The notes under the pieces: model-generated
What the model was told of the DNA's origin: nothing
The model's database searches: none
The model's input: only the letters and a program-made list of their open reading frames with translations
Position numbers and translations under genes: made by a program
Source of the DNA: Phaeosaccion multiseriatum
Taxonomy: Eukaryota; Protista; Ochrophyta, other classes
Assembly: GCA_965112735.1 (NCBI GenBank)
Contig: OZ218959.1
Span: 2,666,001 to 2,730,000, forward strand
DNA length: 64,000 nucleotides
Direction: 5' to 3'
In this document: piece by piece, positions 55,671 through 62,139 of the stretch
Position numbering within the stretch: position 1 is the first letter of the stretch
Layout of the letters: each line of letters starts with the position of its first letter

Positions 55671-55847
55671 CTTTAGCAGTAATATTCTGCTTGTGCAACC
55701 TCTCTCTCTCTCTCTCTCTCGCTGTTGTATGTTCACGTGAAGTTGAGGAGCCGGTGGAGCAGGTGAGGAGACAGTGTGAAACGAAAAAAAAAAAAAAAAA
55801 AAACTATTGATGACCGGTTTTGGTGGGGCGAGATGCCCCACTCGGTG

Positions 55848-55906
55848 AAAGTGGGTATTTTTAGTACCCAATTTTTTTAAAAGTGGGTATTTTTAGTACA
55901 GTACCC
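55848..55906. repeat. 20-bp direct repeat in the Crypton 3' subterminal region
   Basis: AAAGTGGGTATTTTTAGTAC at ~55848 and ~55880, each followed by or overlapping TACCCA, which is complementary to TGGGTA. Confidence 0.85.
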
Positions 55907-56047
55907 AATATGGACCAGTAGCCCCCCTCCCCCCCCCCCTCCTTTTTGGTGTATCTCTCCCCTCCTCCTCCAAAATATACTACGCTATGATATGACGATT
56001 TAATGGTATTACCACGATAACAATGGTATTCATATTTACAGACACAC

Positions 56048-59000
56048 TTAGTGTCCGTCCTCAATCATGCATGGCATACAGTAGTAGTCAAAATCGCCTT
56101 CCGCAAAACCCTTGCTGTCGCAAAACTCGACGGTGCACATGTGGTGCACGAGGTTTCCACACGCTCTTTCGGATGGGCAGAGGAACAGCTTGACTTGCGA
56201 GGGCTTAGTACAGCCATACGAGCATGTGAAGGCCATGTCTCCCTCTCTCAAGCCGCCCAACGACGGCGCTGCTGACGCGGCAGCAGCGGCAGTAGCGGCC
56301 GCAGCGGCCGCATCAGAGGCAGCAGCAGAAGCAGCATCAGAAGCAGTACCAGTACCAGTACGCTGTTTTTTTTGGGCCCCCCTTCCCCCACCCCTTCCTC
56401 CTCGTCCTCCTCCGGCTCCGCCTCCTCCTGTTGCAGCAGCAGCAGCAGCAGCAGCAGCATTGCTGCTGCCACCTCCCTCCTCGTCGTCCTCTGCACCGCT
56501 ATCACCTCCATCCCCCTCCTTCGACTCGTCTGCACCAGTGCCACTTTCCTTCGCCCTCGCCCGCTTCGCCCGTTTTTTCGCGTCCGCCTGCTGCGCGCTC
56601 CATAAATTATACACGGTGGTCCACACCAGCTGATTGAAGCGGCGCTTGTGAGAATCAGAACGAGACTTGATGTCAAAGGCGTCTTTGACTGCGTCAAACA
56701 TGCTTCGCGCTTCTTCAAGCGTCGGCTTGTCCTTCCAGAGCCCCTTTTCTTTCGCCGCGGATTCAATCGCACCCATCAAACAGCAAAATTTTGACATCCT
56801 TCGCTTCTCCGCCCTCCCCTGCACGTCTGCTGTCGTGAATTCTCGAAGGCGAGGAGTGCCTGTCATCCAAGCATCCCAAGCAGCGCGCACAGTGAAGCTA
56901 GGGACCTCAAAGTGCTCGGGAAGGGTATGCCACCGGCCGTTGTAGAGATACAGAGGTGGCTGATCTGCACCTGCACAAGAAGAAGAAGAGGGCGGGGCGC
57001 TGCTCGAACCCTCACCAAGGCCCAGAGTGCCTGCCTGGTGAGCCGCGAGAAGGTCGCTGAGCCCACTCTTAGAAAAGGCTGCGTCGAGGGTCGTCTGCAG
57101 GGCCCTGCTCACACCCAGACTGGTGACAGTGCCAGAGGCCTGTGCATTCTCCTCCAGAACGTCACGGATCAGCGTCTCCAAGTCGACCTTGATCGTCTGG
57201 CCCAACACCTCAAGCTTGCCGCCTAGAGAGGCCACGCTGTCCGCCACGACTTGGAATTGCCTCAGCTGCACGACGTGGGGAGGAATCCCGGTTGCAGAAA
57301 TCTCGTCCGTCTCGTCCGGATACTTCAGCACGACATGCTCTGAAAGGTCCGCCAGCAACCTTTGATCTCGGAAGAGCTGTGTCGTGAAAAGAGGGTGATT
57401 CTCCTGAAGAGTGCTGCGCAGAAAGCCGGCGTGGTACACCACACTGGCAAGACAGAATTCAGCCACCTTCCTCAATCTCAGCGGCACGTCCCTGAAGCAG
57501 CTCACAATGGCTCCCGCGAGCACGTCTTCAATGCCCTCCTTCGCTGTGCCGTCCACCTTGAGGCGCTGAAAAAAGGGAGGAAGCAATGCAAACTCCTTCG
57601 CTGAGATGTTCGCGCCGGAGGCAGCCCGGCCCACATACTGATCTGCTGCATTGATGGGGTTGAAGTAGATGCCCTGCACGCCGGGAAGAGACCATCCCAT
57701 TCGAAGTTGCACAGCAATTGGGTTGGGAGCAGCGGACGAGCCGCTTGTGACGTGCGAGGCAGCGCCCTTGCGCCCAGAATGAGTGCCGAGGTCCTCTGGA
57801 GTCAGCCCCATGCCTTCCAAAATGGACGAGTTCGCCGCCGCCGTACGTCTGAGGAAGCCGCAATACCTATCGTACTGATTGTTGCCAGCGAACAGCGCGT
57901 TCTTCTCAAAACCAAAGCTCAGGAGGTAAACACCAAGCGCGAGGACGGGGCAGATCTCCGGCATGATTGGATTCGCGTAGACGTGGCGAGGATGTCGGGC
58001 CTTCTCTCCCAGCTGATCGCCCTTTTGCTTCCCAAAATAGACGCAGAGCGCGTCCCCCTTCCACTCGAGATGATCGAGACAAATCTCCACACAGTTGGTG
58101 GCGCGGCACATCAGATTCCAGGAGAGAACGAGGAAGGGGTGGCCAAAGGCGCCCTGTCTGTGCCCGTTCTCACAGACTGCCGAGCTCAGCATTGCTGCGA
58201 TGTACACAAGCGAAGGAAACAGTGGCAACCAAAGACGGCGTCAGGGCTAGGAAGTGAGTGGGGGGCATTCAATGCATCAGCCACTTGTCTCCACCCACTC
58301 CACTAGTTTCCACTGTCCACTGACTCCACACAGCTGGGAATTTACCTTTGGCAAGAGCGCGGTAGAGAGCGAACGGCATGGGAGCCTTCCCTTCTCTGAC
58401 TTCGACATTTCCCTCCTGCTTCTCTCCTGCGATCGTCCTCTTCAGCCCCTTGGTGAGCGTCGCAAGGTCGCTTTGCAATTTGCGGTGCTGTTCCTCCTGA
58501 TGGTAGTCTCTGTACAGATTGAAGAGTGCAGAGCGTTTCGACTGTGCACCGGCCTTGGATAAGCCCTTCGGCCCCTTCTTGACTTCAAGCAGCCACCCGA
58601 AGAACGCGTCGGCTGTCAGCAGATGGAACAGCAAAGGGTGCGGCGCCCGAGGTGCTTGGATCAAGTGTGCCTTCACCCGCTTCGTCCACTGCGCCTCAGC
58701 CTTCTTCTTGGCCTTTGCTTGGGCTTTCGCTGCTCTCGACACCTCAGCCGGCGTCTGCTGTGCCGCTGCAGTGGCACCACCCGCTCCGCCAGGTGCGGCG
58801 GCTGCTGCGGCTGCTGCTGCTCTCCTCTGTGCTTCCTCCTCTTCCCCATCTTCCCCGTCTTCCTCCTCTTCCCCTTCCGGTGGAGCAAATGCTGTCCTGA
58901 AGTCAGGGTCCAGAAGCTCCGGGTGCTTGCGGAAGAGGTATCGGATCAGCATGGTGGAGGCGCATGCATATCCACTTCTCGAGCGTGGGGCGATGGTGTT

Positions 59001-59102
59001 GTTTCGGAGGTTCTGAATCTGCTGCTGCTCTGCAGTAAGCGGTGCTTCTTCCCCCTCTGCTGCTGGTGCTTCCGGAACCGTAGCAACAGCGACGTCAGCC
59101 AT
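56048..59102 (-). CDS. Crypton tyrosine recombinase (~967 aa) with C-terminal GCR1_C-like region and PHD-like zinc finger
   Basis: Exons 59102-58346 and 58194-56048 (151-bp GT-AG intron; 2904 nt in frame, joins LYRALAK|AMLSS). Catalytic set WNLMCR, KQKGDQ, RHVYANP..ICPVLALG, GTHSGRKG, RMGWS, QGIY. FEVPSFTVRAAWDAWMTG region; C4HC3-like tail. Confidence 0.9.
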
Positions 59103-59630
59103 GGTATGCTCTGTTCTCCTGCAAATTCACGTGGGAGATGCCCCTCCCACCACTGGCATCAGCTGTTACAGCCGGGTATCGTCCGCGCAGCCGCTGCTCC
59201 TCTTACATAGCTGCCCTGTGCAAATATGCTGATGCTGTGAATGAATAAAAATCCATGTGGGGAGGGGGGGGAGAATGCCCCACAACCAAAAAATATTGGA
59301 TAAAAAACTTGAAAAACGAGCATTTGTGGCCCATAAAATATCCAAAACCATAATTTCGTGGGGCAGGTGCCCCACATCACGGTACTATTAGACATACGGA
59401 CTACAGAGAACTAAAAAAAAGGAGACCAAAACGCACGCACACACACGCACCAAACCCACTACAACTGTCAATAATAAACCGTTTTTTACCGACACACAAA
59501 AATAATTGTATTTTTTTTACAAACACAAAGTTCCCCGCTTGTCGCCGCCGTACCACGCATACACACACACGCGCGCGCACGCACACACACGCACACGCAC
59601 ACACACACGCGCGCGCACGCACACACACGC

Positions 59631-59674
<44 letters not shown>

Positions 59675-59707
59675 GAACACACACACACACACACACACCC
59701 CTCTGCT

Positions 59708-59996
59708 GTCGGCCCTGGAAGAGGTTACAGTATTCGCCGACCATAATCAGTAATCAGGCCGGCTGGCGCCAATAATCAGTAATCAGGCCGGCTAGCGCCC
59801 GTCATAATCAGTAATCAGGCCGGCTGGCGCCGGTCATAATCAGTAATCAGACCCGGCTGGCGCCGGCCATAATCAGTAATCAGGCCCGGCTGGCGCCATA
59901 ATCAGTAATCAGGCCGGCTGGCGCCGGCAGTAATCAGTAATCAGGCCGGCTGCGCCGGCCGTAATCAGTAATCTGATAACCTCTTCCAGGGCCGAC
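59708..59996. mobile_element. 289-bp MITE-like element: perfect 20-bp TIRs, TGCT flanking duplication, internal array of 8 x RTAATCAGTAATCAG
   Basis: GTCGGCCCTGGAAGAGGTTA (59708-59727) and TAACCTCTTCCAGGGCCGAC (59977-59996). TGCT at 59704-59707 and 59997-60000. The 15-bp cores alternate with 14-18-bp GC-rich linkers (GCCGGCTGGCGCC variants). Confidence 0.85.
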
Positions 59997-60412
59997 TGCT
60001 GACTCTGCTGCTCGCTGCGAGAAGGGAAGGTGCACGGGCAACGTTCTCCGACTTTTGCGATACCTTACGCAGTTTTGGGCGAAGAGAGGGGGGGAGATAT
60101 AGTAATTCCCCCCCCCCCCCTTTTTTTTATGTGATCCCTTTTTATTTGGTTTAGTGGCCGAGTTTTGTGACCCTTTCTTATGAATAGTGGCACGGCTCCA
60201 ACAGTGTCGTCGTTGGTTGCCTGTCCCCCCCCCCCCCCTCTCCACCCCTCCCCCTAACTTCACATTTTCCCTTCCCTTCCTTTCCTTGAGTGCAGAACTG
60301 CAGAGCTGTCGAGTGTGATTCCCGTGTTCATAAGCCAGGAATATCTCTACACAGCTGCAATCAAGTCAAGTCCCCTTAGGGGATCATATCAATATCCAGT
60401 GTACCTCCCTAC

Positions 60413-61852
60413 TCACTCCCCTCCTCGGTTGGCTCGGCGGCGGCGGAGGCCCAACGCGGGGCCACGGTGGTGGAGAGGAGGCTGCGCTCCCTTGCCATGG
60501 GGGCCGCGACCAGCAGCAGGGCCAGCAGCACGGCCAGCAGCAGGGCCAGCAGCAGGGTGAGCAGCTCCTCCATGTCCTTCGCCTTGCATCAGGCGAGCGT
60601 GGCGCTGGGCAAAGCGGTGGAAGTCTTGCAGCTGCTCCTTCCCGAGAGAGCCCAAACGGACGAAGCGCCCAGGCAGCACGTTGAGGGCCTTCAGCAGGGT
60701 CAGGGCTTCGACGTTGCTGTGGAGGCCCACCCCGCCCTTAGCCAGCACAGACAGGAGCGACGCGCCGTTTTCGACCTTCATGTCGTCGTCCGCACCCATG
60801 GCAGGGGGAGGGGGTGGGGCCGTGAAGTCCACAGCAGCGGCATCCATGGCCTGCTTCAGCTCCCCGCCCTTGATGATGTTCGCCTGCTTCAGGCGGCAGA
60901 TGGGCAGCTTCGACACGCGCAGGAAGCTCCACAGCTGAGTGGGCGTCAGGCGGAGCCCGAAGCGCTCGTCCAGCGTGGCCGTGGCAGACTTCAGCAGCTC
61001 AGAGGCCTCCGGGTCGGCATCAAGAGACGAGTGGAGAGCAGAGACGCGGGCCTGGCGCTTGCCCAGCTTCTTGCCTTCATCTCCCTTCGCGTCCTCCCCC
61101 TTTGCCTCTACCCAGCCGGCGTCGTCCTCACCGCTCGTGGCGGCAATGACCTCGCGTTCAACGGCACCCTCCTTCTTGCTGCGTTGGCGGCTCTCCTTGT
61201 CCATCTCGGGCTTCTCCTTCTCCTCGGCATGAAACTCGCGCAGCTGCTGCTTCTCCAAGAGGCCCAAGCGAACGAAGCGCTGGGGCGCCACATTGAGGGC
61301 CTTCAGCAGCACGCGAGCGTCCGCCTTGCTGTCCAGCCCGCCGCCCATGTCCTTGACGAGCAAAGCCAGCAGCGTGACTCCCTTGGCCATCACGCGGTCC
61401 TCCGCACCCACGGCAGGGGGGGGAGGTGGGGCTGTGAAGTCCGCAGCGGCATCCATGGCCTGCTTCAGCTCCCCGCCCTTGATGAGCTCGGCGCCCTTGA
61501 GGCGGCACACGGGCAGCTGCGAGAGGCGCAAGAAGCCCCACAGCTGAGTGGAGGTTAGGACCAGCCCAAAACGCTCGTCCAGCGAGGCCGTGGCAGCCTT
61601 CAGCAGCTCAGAGGCCTCCGGATCAGCATCCAGAGAGGCATGGAGAGAGGAGAAGCGGGCCTTGCGGACTTCCTGAAGAGCCCCGCGCTCCTCCTTGCTC
61701 CGCTTCTCGTCTCTGCCAGAACTGGCGTTGGCGCTTCCCTCCTCCACCTTTGCCTCCACCCAGCCGTCGTCGTCCTCCCCGCCCATGGCAGCAGTACTGC
61801 GGTTCTCCTTCGTGGTTTTGCTGTTGTTCATCTTGTTCTTGATCTGCACCAT
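60413..61852 (-). CDS. Intronless orphan ORF (~480 aa) made of two tandem ~190-aa homologous modules
   Basis: Start MVQIKNK at 61852. Modules ~61795-61226 and ~61147-60614 share GEDD.GWVEAK, LH.SLDADPEASELLK.ATA.LDERFGL.LT.TQLW.FLR.S.LP.CRLK.A..IKGGELKQAMDAAA.FTAPPPPPA and LLKALNV.P.RFVRLG.L.K.QL..FH; strong GC3 bias. Confidence 0.75.
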   Translation of the reverse strand: MVQIKNKMNNSKTTKENRSTAAMGGEDDDGWVEAKVEEGSANASSGRDEKRSKEERGALQEVRKARFSSLHASLDADPEASELLKAATASLDERFGLVLTSTQLWGFLRLSQLPVCRLKGAELIKGGELKQAMDAAADFTAPPPPPAVGAEDRVMAKGVTLLALLVKDMGGGLDSKADARVLLKALNVAPQRFVRLGLLEKQQLREFHAEEKEKPEMDKESRQRSKKEGAVEREVIAATSGEDDAGWVEAKGEDAKGDEGKKLGKRQARVSALHSSLDADPEASELLKSATATLDERFGLRLTPTQLWSFLRVSKLPICRLKQANIIKGGELKQAMDAAAVDFTAPPPPPAMGADDDMKVENGASLLSVLAKGGVGLHSNVEALTLLKALNVLPGRFVRLGSLGKEQLQDFHRFAQRHARLMQGEGHGGAAHPAAGPAAGRAAGPAAGRGPHGKGAQPPLHHRGPALGLRRRRANRGGE

Positions 61853-61944
61853 GGTTGTGATATATATTTGATGTGATGAGAAATCGCACATTCCAACCGT
61901 CGGTCCGGGAACGATCCCAAAAAAAAGTTTTTTCTTTTGATTAC

Positions 61945-62139
61945 CAAGGTACTGCTGATTACAGCCGGCGCAAGCTGATTATGGCGCCAGCCGGGCCTAT
62001 TACTGATTATGGCCGGCGCCAGCCGTGTCTGATTACTGATTATGACCGGCGCTAGCCGGCCTGATTACTGATTATTGGCGCCAGCCGGCCTGATTACTGA
62101 TTATGGCCGGCGCACACTGTAACCTTGTCCAGGGTCGAC
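61945..62139. mobile_element. Second, inverted and one-end-truncated copy of the TAATCAG-array element
   Basis: Reverse complement begins GTCGACCCTGGACAAGGTTACAGTGTGCGCCGGCCATAATCAGTAATCAG and repeats the linker variants of the first copy in the same order with one unit missing. The inner TIR is absent or degenerate. Confidence 0.85.

Follow-up and report, generated by a model that had tools for sequence, protein, structure and literature searches.

How do an intact tyrosine recombinase (YR) gene and a gene bracketed by inverted repeat arrays come to lie side by side in the genome of Phaeosaccion multiseriatum? The block concerned (55803-62139 of the window, the whole 64-kb stretch of DNA analysed here) lies between host genes, and its preliminary description offered three readings: a gene-carrying foldback or composite transposon, an invertible or excisable cassette associated with the recombinase, or a chance cluster of insertions. 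The evidence backs the last of these and leaves the other two unsupported. The block is composed of a many-copy Crypton, two separately inserted MITEs and, between the MITEs, a recently duplicated host gene; each component is independent, and the recombinase has no link to the arrays or to the enclosed gene. That the block as a whole is a pile-up of independent events is, in our judgement, very probable. The value of this result is mainly negative: what looked like a eukaryotic recombinase cassette of an undescribed type proves to be made up of elements of known kinds, and the layout should not be treated as a new system. As to the neighbouring host genes, the proposed FabI on the left was confirmed (PF13561, E 3e-26) and on the right a cyclophilin exon can be made out by eye only, this fragment giving no match in Pfam.

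The recombinase gene belongs to a discrete Crypton-type tyrosine-recombinase transposon of 3.6 kb (55804-59412, minus strand), delimited by homology among its copies, which begins at about 55804 and stops at 59412. The genome carries at least 33 copies, with identities of 93-100%; in 23 of them the catalytic part (243 aa) is 100% identical. All 19 of the other copies inspected at the right end terminate at the same base, in ...ACAGAGAACT, and continue into unrelated flanks. The tips of the element (CTATTG... and ...GAACT) do not form an inverted repeat and have only CT in common. Close to each tip is a subterminal palindrome on the plus strand, GTGGGGC-N5-GCCCCAC (55823-55841, 19 nt inside the left end) and GTGGGGC-N4-GCCCCAC (59358-59375, 37 nt inside the right end). 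The motif has two matches in the 64-kb window, both at these ends, and none in 100 shuffles; the two palindromes are the likeliest candidates for docking sites of the recombinase. The Crypton would have inserted into an A-run and, to judge from its family, its recombinase would excise the element as a circle and then reintegrate it. Since the family is unusually abundant and young, it could provide a model for Crypton transposition.

A single gene of 967 codons fills the Crypton. It is represented in the sequence by two minus-strand ORFs in different frames, 58269-59102, which carries the SAM-like N-terminal part, and 56048-58228 (ORF2), which carries the catalytic part, and both align collinearly with one homologue of 757 aa (P0001). 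A predicted 151-nt GT..AG intron (58195-58345, minus strand), read from the sequence, would link the two frames, and its removal would give the 967 codons with a junction, ...LYRALAK-A-MLSS..., in agreement with the homologues. Exon 1 (58346-59102, minus strand; GT donor at 58345) covers the SAM-like region, which corresponds to residues 19-229 of P0001 and weakly matches PF13495, while exon 2 (56048-58194, minus strand) includes the catalytic domain, a conserved C-terminal region, a low-complexity stretch and a Cys/His-rich tail. Homology searches were carried out with each ORF separately, the exons being left unjoined. Exon 2 is 37% identical to P0001 over 544 aa, remains collinear with it as far as ORF2 residue 538, and retrieved 103 homologues (E 5e-68 to 1e-21), including proteins from Phytophthora, Chaetoceros and Hanusia. 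The complete catalytic set (R42, K69, H150, R153, W179 and Y188 in ORF2 numbering) is conserved, each residue falling in a column that is invariant or nearly so in an alignment of 10 proteins, and the gene is intact, as had been proposed. Pfam detected neither a reverse transcriptase or other enzyme domain nor a GCR1_C domain in either ORF.

These properties recall CryptonS, elements of oomycetes and diatoms described by Kojima and Jurka (2011; PMC3212892). CryptonS termini are mostly TATGG, with terminal direct repeats of 5-6 bp, some members are fused to a Ulp1/C48 peptidase, and Crypton copy number is very low in most hosts (PMC3212892). Like CryptonS, the window's Crypton is filled by one tyrosine-recombinase gene and has no GCR1_C domain and apparently no long terminal repeats; it also differs from DIRS and Ngaro in carrying no reverse transcriptase. 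Its homologues include proteins from the host groups by which CryptonS were defined, Phytophthora (E 1e-52 to 1e-37) and the diatom Chaetoceros (2e-44), and one relative is fused to a Ulp1/C48 peptidase; through these homologues a kinship with the CryptonS group receives indirect support. Unlike most CryptonS, the element does not end in TATGG, which is absent from both tips. It further departs from the group in its matching subterminal palindromes, its extra Cys/His-rich tail and the size of its family, whose copies are mostly near-identical and young.

The 2.43-kb array-bracketed segment starts 606 bp from the recombinase start codon (59102), much as the preliminary description had it (about 600 bp). 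A (CA)n/(CACG)n microsatellite (59554-59698), outside both elements, occupies part of the host DNA that separates the Crypton from the segment. The left array is a complete MITE of 287 bp belonging to the AAGAGG subfamily (59709-59995, plus strand). It has inverted ends of 19-20 bp at both sides (TCGGCCCTGGAAGAGGTTA), shared with other family members, and lies between two perfectly matching 6-bp copies of a target duplication, CTGCTG (59703-59708 and 59996-60001). Its interior consists of 8 units of about 32 bp, each including a TAATCAG doublet and a GC-rich linker, and the element is 100% identical over 287 bp to the copies at three other loci (L002-L004). The arrays are indeed scattered genome-wide: the family occupies 97 loci with exact ends on 16 contigs, its copies being 96-100% identical. 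Target duplications measured exactly 6 bp in 23 of 28 cases and 7 bp in 3 (at least 6 bp in 26 of 28), a length which fits no single well-known superfamily. Apart from separate MITEs, there are no exact-end inverted pairs more than about 600 bp apart that might represent an autonomous partner. In its size, lack of coding sequence, inverted ends and fixed-length duplication, and in belonging to a family of about 100 near-identical copies with insertions next to genes, the left array resembles MITEs in general; unlike in usual MITEs, the entire interior is a regular eight-unit repeat array, a feature which may help to identify the corresponding transposase. As this MITE has its own perfect duplication, it arrived alone, and the 6-bp duplications of its family point to a staggered-cut transposase rather than to a YR. 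It would have inserted very recently, about 130 bp past the point where the duplicated gene segment ends on its 3' side, by cut-and-paste with staggered cuts and a transposase supplied in trans, the 6-bp duplication being formed in the process.

The right array is a degenerate MITE (61944-62138, minus strand) which, when aligned with the left copy and with another subfamily member (L030), matches the ACAAGG subfamily at diagnostic positions. Its outer end is preserved with one change (TCGACCC), its inner end is lost, and two array stretches, of 32 and 12 alignment columns, are missing. It is 90.5% identical to the left MITE over 169 bp (blastn), and its outer flank reads CTCTTG as against CTGCTG at the left MITE. 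It is probably an older insertion: a copy of a different subfamily would have landed upstream of the same gene, at a distance of about 50 bp, and would later have lost some of its array units as well as the inner end. Because the two MITEs lie in opposite orientation, together they give the appearance of one 2.43-kb unit with long inverted ends. The inverted arms are real (59708-59818 and 62029-62139, 111 nt, 94% complementary, with further arms of 77 nt at 97% and 85 nt at 86%); one correction is that the left arm is a complete element with inverted ends of its own. Exact TAATCAG doublets number 7 in the left array and 3 in the right, and occur nowhere else in the 64 kb.

Between the MITEs lies a gene segment of 1.79 kb (60134-61919, minus strand) that is 96% identical (blastn) to a paralog (L032) on the same contig, at a distance of 125 kb; the gene is therefore not single-copy. 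Only this segment is common to the two loci, neither of its boundaries falls at a MITE end, and no MITE sequence is present at the paralog. The ORF family comprises four other loci in the genome, none of them at a Crypton copy; conversely, the gene is absent beside every other copy of the Crypton, and no MITE occurs within 1.5 kb of the three more distant paralogs. The ORF itself (60413-61891, minus strand; 492 aa as listed, with a probable start at Met14, base 61852) is, as had been described, single, uninterrupted and internally duplicated: it includes two units of some 150 aa each, both all-helical (61217-61681 and 60587-61066), and an alignment of its halves gives 70% identity over 148 aa. 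Between the window's copy and its close paralog dN/dS is 0.41, a value resting on only 18 differences.

The ORF had been called an orphan, which it is not in the strict sense. A profile search with the helical unit found 13 relatives (E 4e-10 to 1e-3), at least five of which match the full unit, three of these coming from brown algae (Laminaria, Ascophyllum and Undaria). In relatives with Pfam domains the unit follows a PB1 domain or precedes an N_BRCA1_IG domain, a comparison with P0107 gave a probability of 97.7% (hhalign), and in a paralog of the same genome (L035) a PB1 domain precedes the unit. The helical unit is thus homologous to a segment of PB1- or N_BRCA1_IG-bearing brown-algal proteins, and the gene has distant relatives among NBR1-like PB1 proteins. 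Unlike these, the ORF of the window carries no PB1 or FW domain, contains the helical unit twice and ends in a Gly/Pro/His-rich tail. The enclosed ORF is a host gene and a young duplicate, which can now be assigned to a family of stramenopile proteins that has kinship with the PB1-bearing, NBR1-like ones.

Could the two MITEs nevertheless act together? In a nascent Pack-like composite, the transposase of the MITE family would pair the outer ends and might move the 2.43-kb unit with its gene, and the arrangement does recall Pack-type and bacterial-style composite transposons in placing a gene between two inverted copies of one family's ends. The outer ends are correctly inverted, one exact and the other with its single change, in the orientation that a transposase could use, so that composite mobilisation is physically possible; the lost inner end of the right MITE would favour the outer pair, and genome-wide it is rare for two MITE loci to be separated by less than 2.2 kb (0.3 expected, one observed). 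Such elements nonetheless differ from what is found here. The unit shares no target duplication, its flanks being dissimilar, and the left MITE has a perfect duplication to itself; the arms differ in subfamily and age, and no second copy of the unit exists in the genome. The sole close copy of the gene is free of MITEs, which itself argues against a mobile composite. We consider this reading very unlikely.

We regard as extremely unlikely the proposal that the inverted arrays serve the adjacent recombinase as sites for inverting or excising the gene. It draws on the intact YR gene only 606 bp away, on the 111-nt arms that bracket the gene and on the finding that Cryptons and MITEs are close neighbours more often than they would be under uniform placement. 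Against it, the recombinase belongs to a self-contained mobile element, the other copies of which have no cassette, and 31 of 33 Crypton copies have no exact-end MITE of the left-array family within 12 kb; where MITEs do occur near Cryptons, they sit at different Crypton ends and belong to different families. YR sites are typically inverted half-sites with a spacer (PMC3212892), whereas the arrays are direct 7-mer doublets. They share nothing with the Crypton ends, and the Crypton's own palindromes, found only at 55823 and 59358, are absent from them.

The independent insertion of the components, which we prefer, leaves the proximity of Cryptons and MITEs to be explained. Of 33 Cryptons, two have an exact-end MITE of the left-array family no more than 400 bp away, when 0.04 would be expected under uniform placement (P ~7e-4), and at a third a MITE of a sister family lies some 230 bp from the end of the element. 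This excess over uniform placement implies that the closeness is not purely random. We see little likelihood that it reflects coupling, one element targeting the other, or that the two MITEs form a nascent composite, movable or invertible by the MITE transposase. The closeness is tentatively attributed here to a shared narrow insertion niche: there is about an even chance that the association is passive, Cryptons and MITEs having a common target preference (for example short stretches of promoter-proximal open DNA) and common hot spots with no functional coupling. Three cases are involved and the MITE is not always placed in the same way with respect to the Crypton, but three of 33 Cryptons within 400 bp of such MITEs compares with about 0.04-0.1 expected, and the excess loses significance (P = 0.06) if both kinds of element are confined to an assumed ~10% of the genome. 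At two other loci, near C1:6.27 Mb and C8:2.485 Mb, MITEs of the two sister families are likewise adjacent to each other.

The features seen beforehand in this block, an intact tyrosine recombinase (YR) gene next to a gene enclosed by two inverted repeat arrays, were all found in the sequence, which confirms the observation. To the left of the block is a spliced gene for enoyl-ACP reductase (FabI; PF13561, E 3e-26), and to the right an exon which resembles cyclophilin by eye, the exon fragment itself having no Pfam match. The G+C content of the block (0.53–0.62) is inside the range of the remainder of the window. The analysis supports the reading which the preliminary description had kept as a fallback, that the parts form a cluster of insertions.

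The recombinase gene belongs to a Crypton (55804-59412, minus strand) and is read in two ORFs whose frames differ. The ORF at 58269-59102 (-) aligns to residues 19-229 of P0001, a 757-aa eukaryotic homologue, and that at 56048-58228 (-) to residues 226-744, in the same order as in the homologue. A 151-nt intron can be predicted on the minus strand (GT donor, 58345; AG acceptor, 58196-58195); splicing it out yields a 967-codon gene whose junction reads like those of the homologues. The two exons were searched one by one. The recombinase has 103 relatives (E 5e-68 to 1e-21), and the catalytic residues R42, K69, H150, R153, W179 and Y188 occupy invariant or nearly invariant columns of the alignment. 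Among the relatives are proteins of Phytophthora, one of a cryptophyte and one of Chaetoceros that is fused to a Ulp1 peptidase; they match, in host groups and in the peptidase link, those reported for the CryptonS group by Kojima and Jurka (PMC3212892). A sequence search of the catalytic region against solved structures returned only noise. The C-terminal ~60 aa (56048-56230, -) are rich in Cys and His (C-x3-C-x10-C-x5-C-x4-HH-x-C-x4-C-x13-C-x2-C), with a spacing near the C4HC3 (PHD-like) layout; no zinc-finger family was found in Pfam for this tail at E up to 1.

A genome search with a 243-aa catalytic piece of the 726-aa Crypton ORF gave 36 matches, 23 of them at 100% identity. Similarity between the copies runs from ~55804 on the left to 59412 on the right, where 19 other copies have the same last base (...ACAGAGAACT) and then pass into unrelated DNA. 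These limits show that the Crypton of the window is a discrete 3.6-kb transposon. It is inserted in a run of A residues, 20 of them flanking one end and 8 the other, and includes candidate binding palindromes 19 nt inside one end (GTGGGGC-N5-GCCCCAC) and 37 nt inside the other (GTGGGGC-N4-GCCCCAC), both absent elsewhere in the 64 kb. Beyond the right end, the flanks of several copies among L036-L055 start with GAAAGT, GAAACT, GAACAT or GAAATT; these resemble the final bases of the Crypton, GAACT, and may represent a recombination core common to the target. Same-strand pairs of Cryptons, ~1 kb and 8 kb apart, occur on contig 1 at ~4957771-4965990 and 3108962-3124094, respectively.

The arrays are MITEs. 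That on the left (59709-59995, AAGAGG subfamily) is a complete element which starts with TCGGCCCTGGAAGAGGTTA, closes with its reverse complement and has CTGCTG at either flank; three copies on other contigs match it at 100% over 287 bp. Exact-end searches for the family gave 83 and 73 ends, merged into 97 loci on 16 contigs, and length differences among copies stem from the number of array units. Of 28 copies, 23 have a target duplication of exactly 6 bp and three have one of 7 bp. Duplications of constant length mark the action of a staggered-cut transposase rather than that of a tyrosine recombinase. An origin of the MITE as a non-autonomous Crypton derivative was rejected, since its ends bear no relation to those of the Crypton and its insertion creates 6-bp duplications. 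The right array (61944-62138), opposite in orientation to the left one, carries the diagnostic bases of the ACAAGG subfamily (ACAAGG, and GTGTGCGCCGGCC), like another member of that subfamily, L030; it is without two array stretches and without its inner end, its outer end shows a single change, and CTCTTG borders it on the outside. By these characters the two arms belong to different subfamilies and are unlike in age and integrity; the left arm arrived alone.

The enclosed 492-aa ORF (60413-61891, -) probably starts at Met14, a residue common to its paralog, and comprises two ~150-aa units which are 70% identical. The paralog lies at a distance of 125 kb on the same contig. Its 96% identity is confined to 60134-61919, a stretch made up of the coding region with 67 bp before the probable start (Met14) and 279 bp after the stop, and the locus has no MITE sequence. 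The two copies differ at 8 synonymous and 10 non-synonymous sites, too few for the dN/dS of 0.41 to be firm. Three further, more distant paralogs in the genome consist of a single unit and are free of MITEs to a distance of 1.5 kb in both directions. ORFs are uninterrupted in both gene copies and in these three paralogs, and the absence of introns is common to the family members seen in this genome. A retrocopy origin of the duplicate was considered and is a possibility: the duplicated segment stops ~10 nt past an AATAAA-like signal, but a clear poly(A) tail is missing from both copies, and all five loci have uninterrupted ORFs. GGGAT is present at both limits of the 1.79-kb segment (60134-60140 and 61913-61919) in both copies and may be a microhomology where the duplication broke.

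Pfam, a word-based protein search and the ESM Atlas gave no match to the ORF; among the searches made with it, only an exhaustive profile search yielded relatives, 13 in number (E 4e-10 to 1e-3). In at least five of the 13 the match extends over the full length of the unit, and three of the five come from brown algae (Laminaria, Ascophyllum, Undaria); in those with Pfam domains the unit follows a PB1 domain or precedes an N_BRCA1_IG domain. Alignment of the unit with one relative, P0107, by hhalign gave a probability of 97.7% with 31% identity over 130 columns, and one paralog in this genome has a PB1 domain ahead of the unit. The gene is thus a member of a host family with kinship to NBR1-like proteins. 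An AlphaFold model of one unit is all helices (pLDDT 77.5) and has no meaningful structural match (best Foldseek E 1.1; best VIA-align Z 3.7); the fold as modelled gives no function. Before each helical unit stands an acidic tryptophan motif (EDDDGWVEAK and EDDAGWVEAK, residues ~27-36 and 245-254) which resembles an Atg8-interacting motif, except for Ala at the last core position, a likeness that is suggestive given this kinship.

These data do not support a gene-carrying composite or foldback transposon, as had been suggested from the paired arrays, because the arms differ, the left one inserted by itself and the paralog is without MITEs. Nor do they support a cassette inverted or excised by the YR: the MITE duplications are of fixed length, the ORF family's four other loci are, by their coordinates, far from all Crypton copies, and the distance to the nearest exact-end MITE, 297 bp in the window and 393 bp on contig 1, is at least 12.5 kb for the other 31 of 33 Cryptons.

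Two Cryptons within 400 bp of a MITE have P ~7e-4 under uniform placement; with both element types restricted to about a tenth of the genome, the excess loses its significance (P = 0.06). In the 393-bp case, the Crypton copy at ~0.81 Mb of contig 1, known from coordinates, the MITE is at the opposite Crypton end. MITEs of this family and of a sister family are direct neighbours at two further loci, and for pairs of MITE loci closer together than 2.2 kb the genome-wide expectation is 0.3. The closeness of Cryptons and MITEs may reflect an insertion niche common to both. A third Crypton (L041, contig 9) is accompanied, ~230 bp past its end, by a MITE of the sister family, whose array motif is different (L041:3636-3729). 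The ends of this sister family start with TCGGCCCCTGA, AGAAGCAGGAAGCAG replaces the TAATCAG doublet in its array while the GCCGGCTGGCGCCGG linker is retained, and a first-look search gave at least 194 candidates. On contig 5 (1446926-1447382), a 457-bp unit with both ends of the same type (...TTACAG) adjoins a normal MITE and may be a head-to-head MITE rearrangement.
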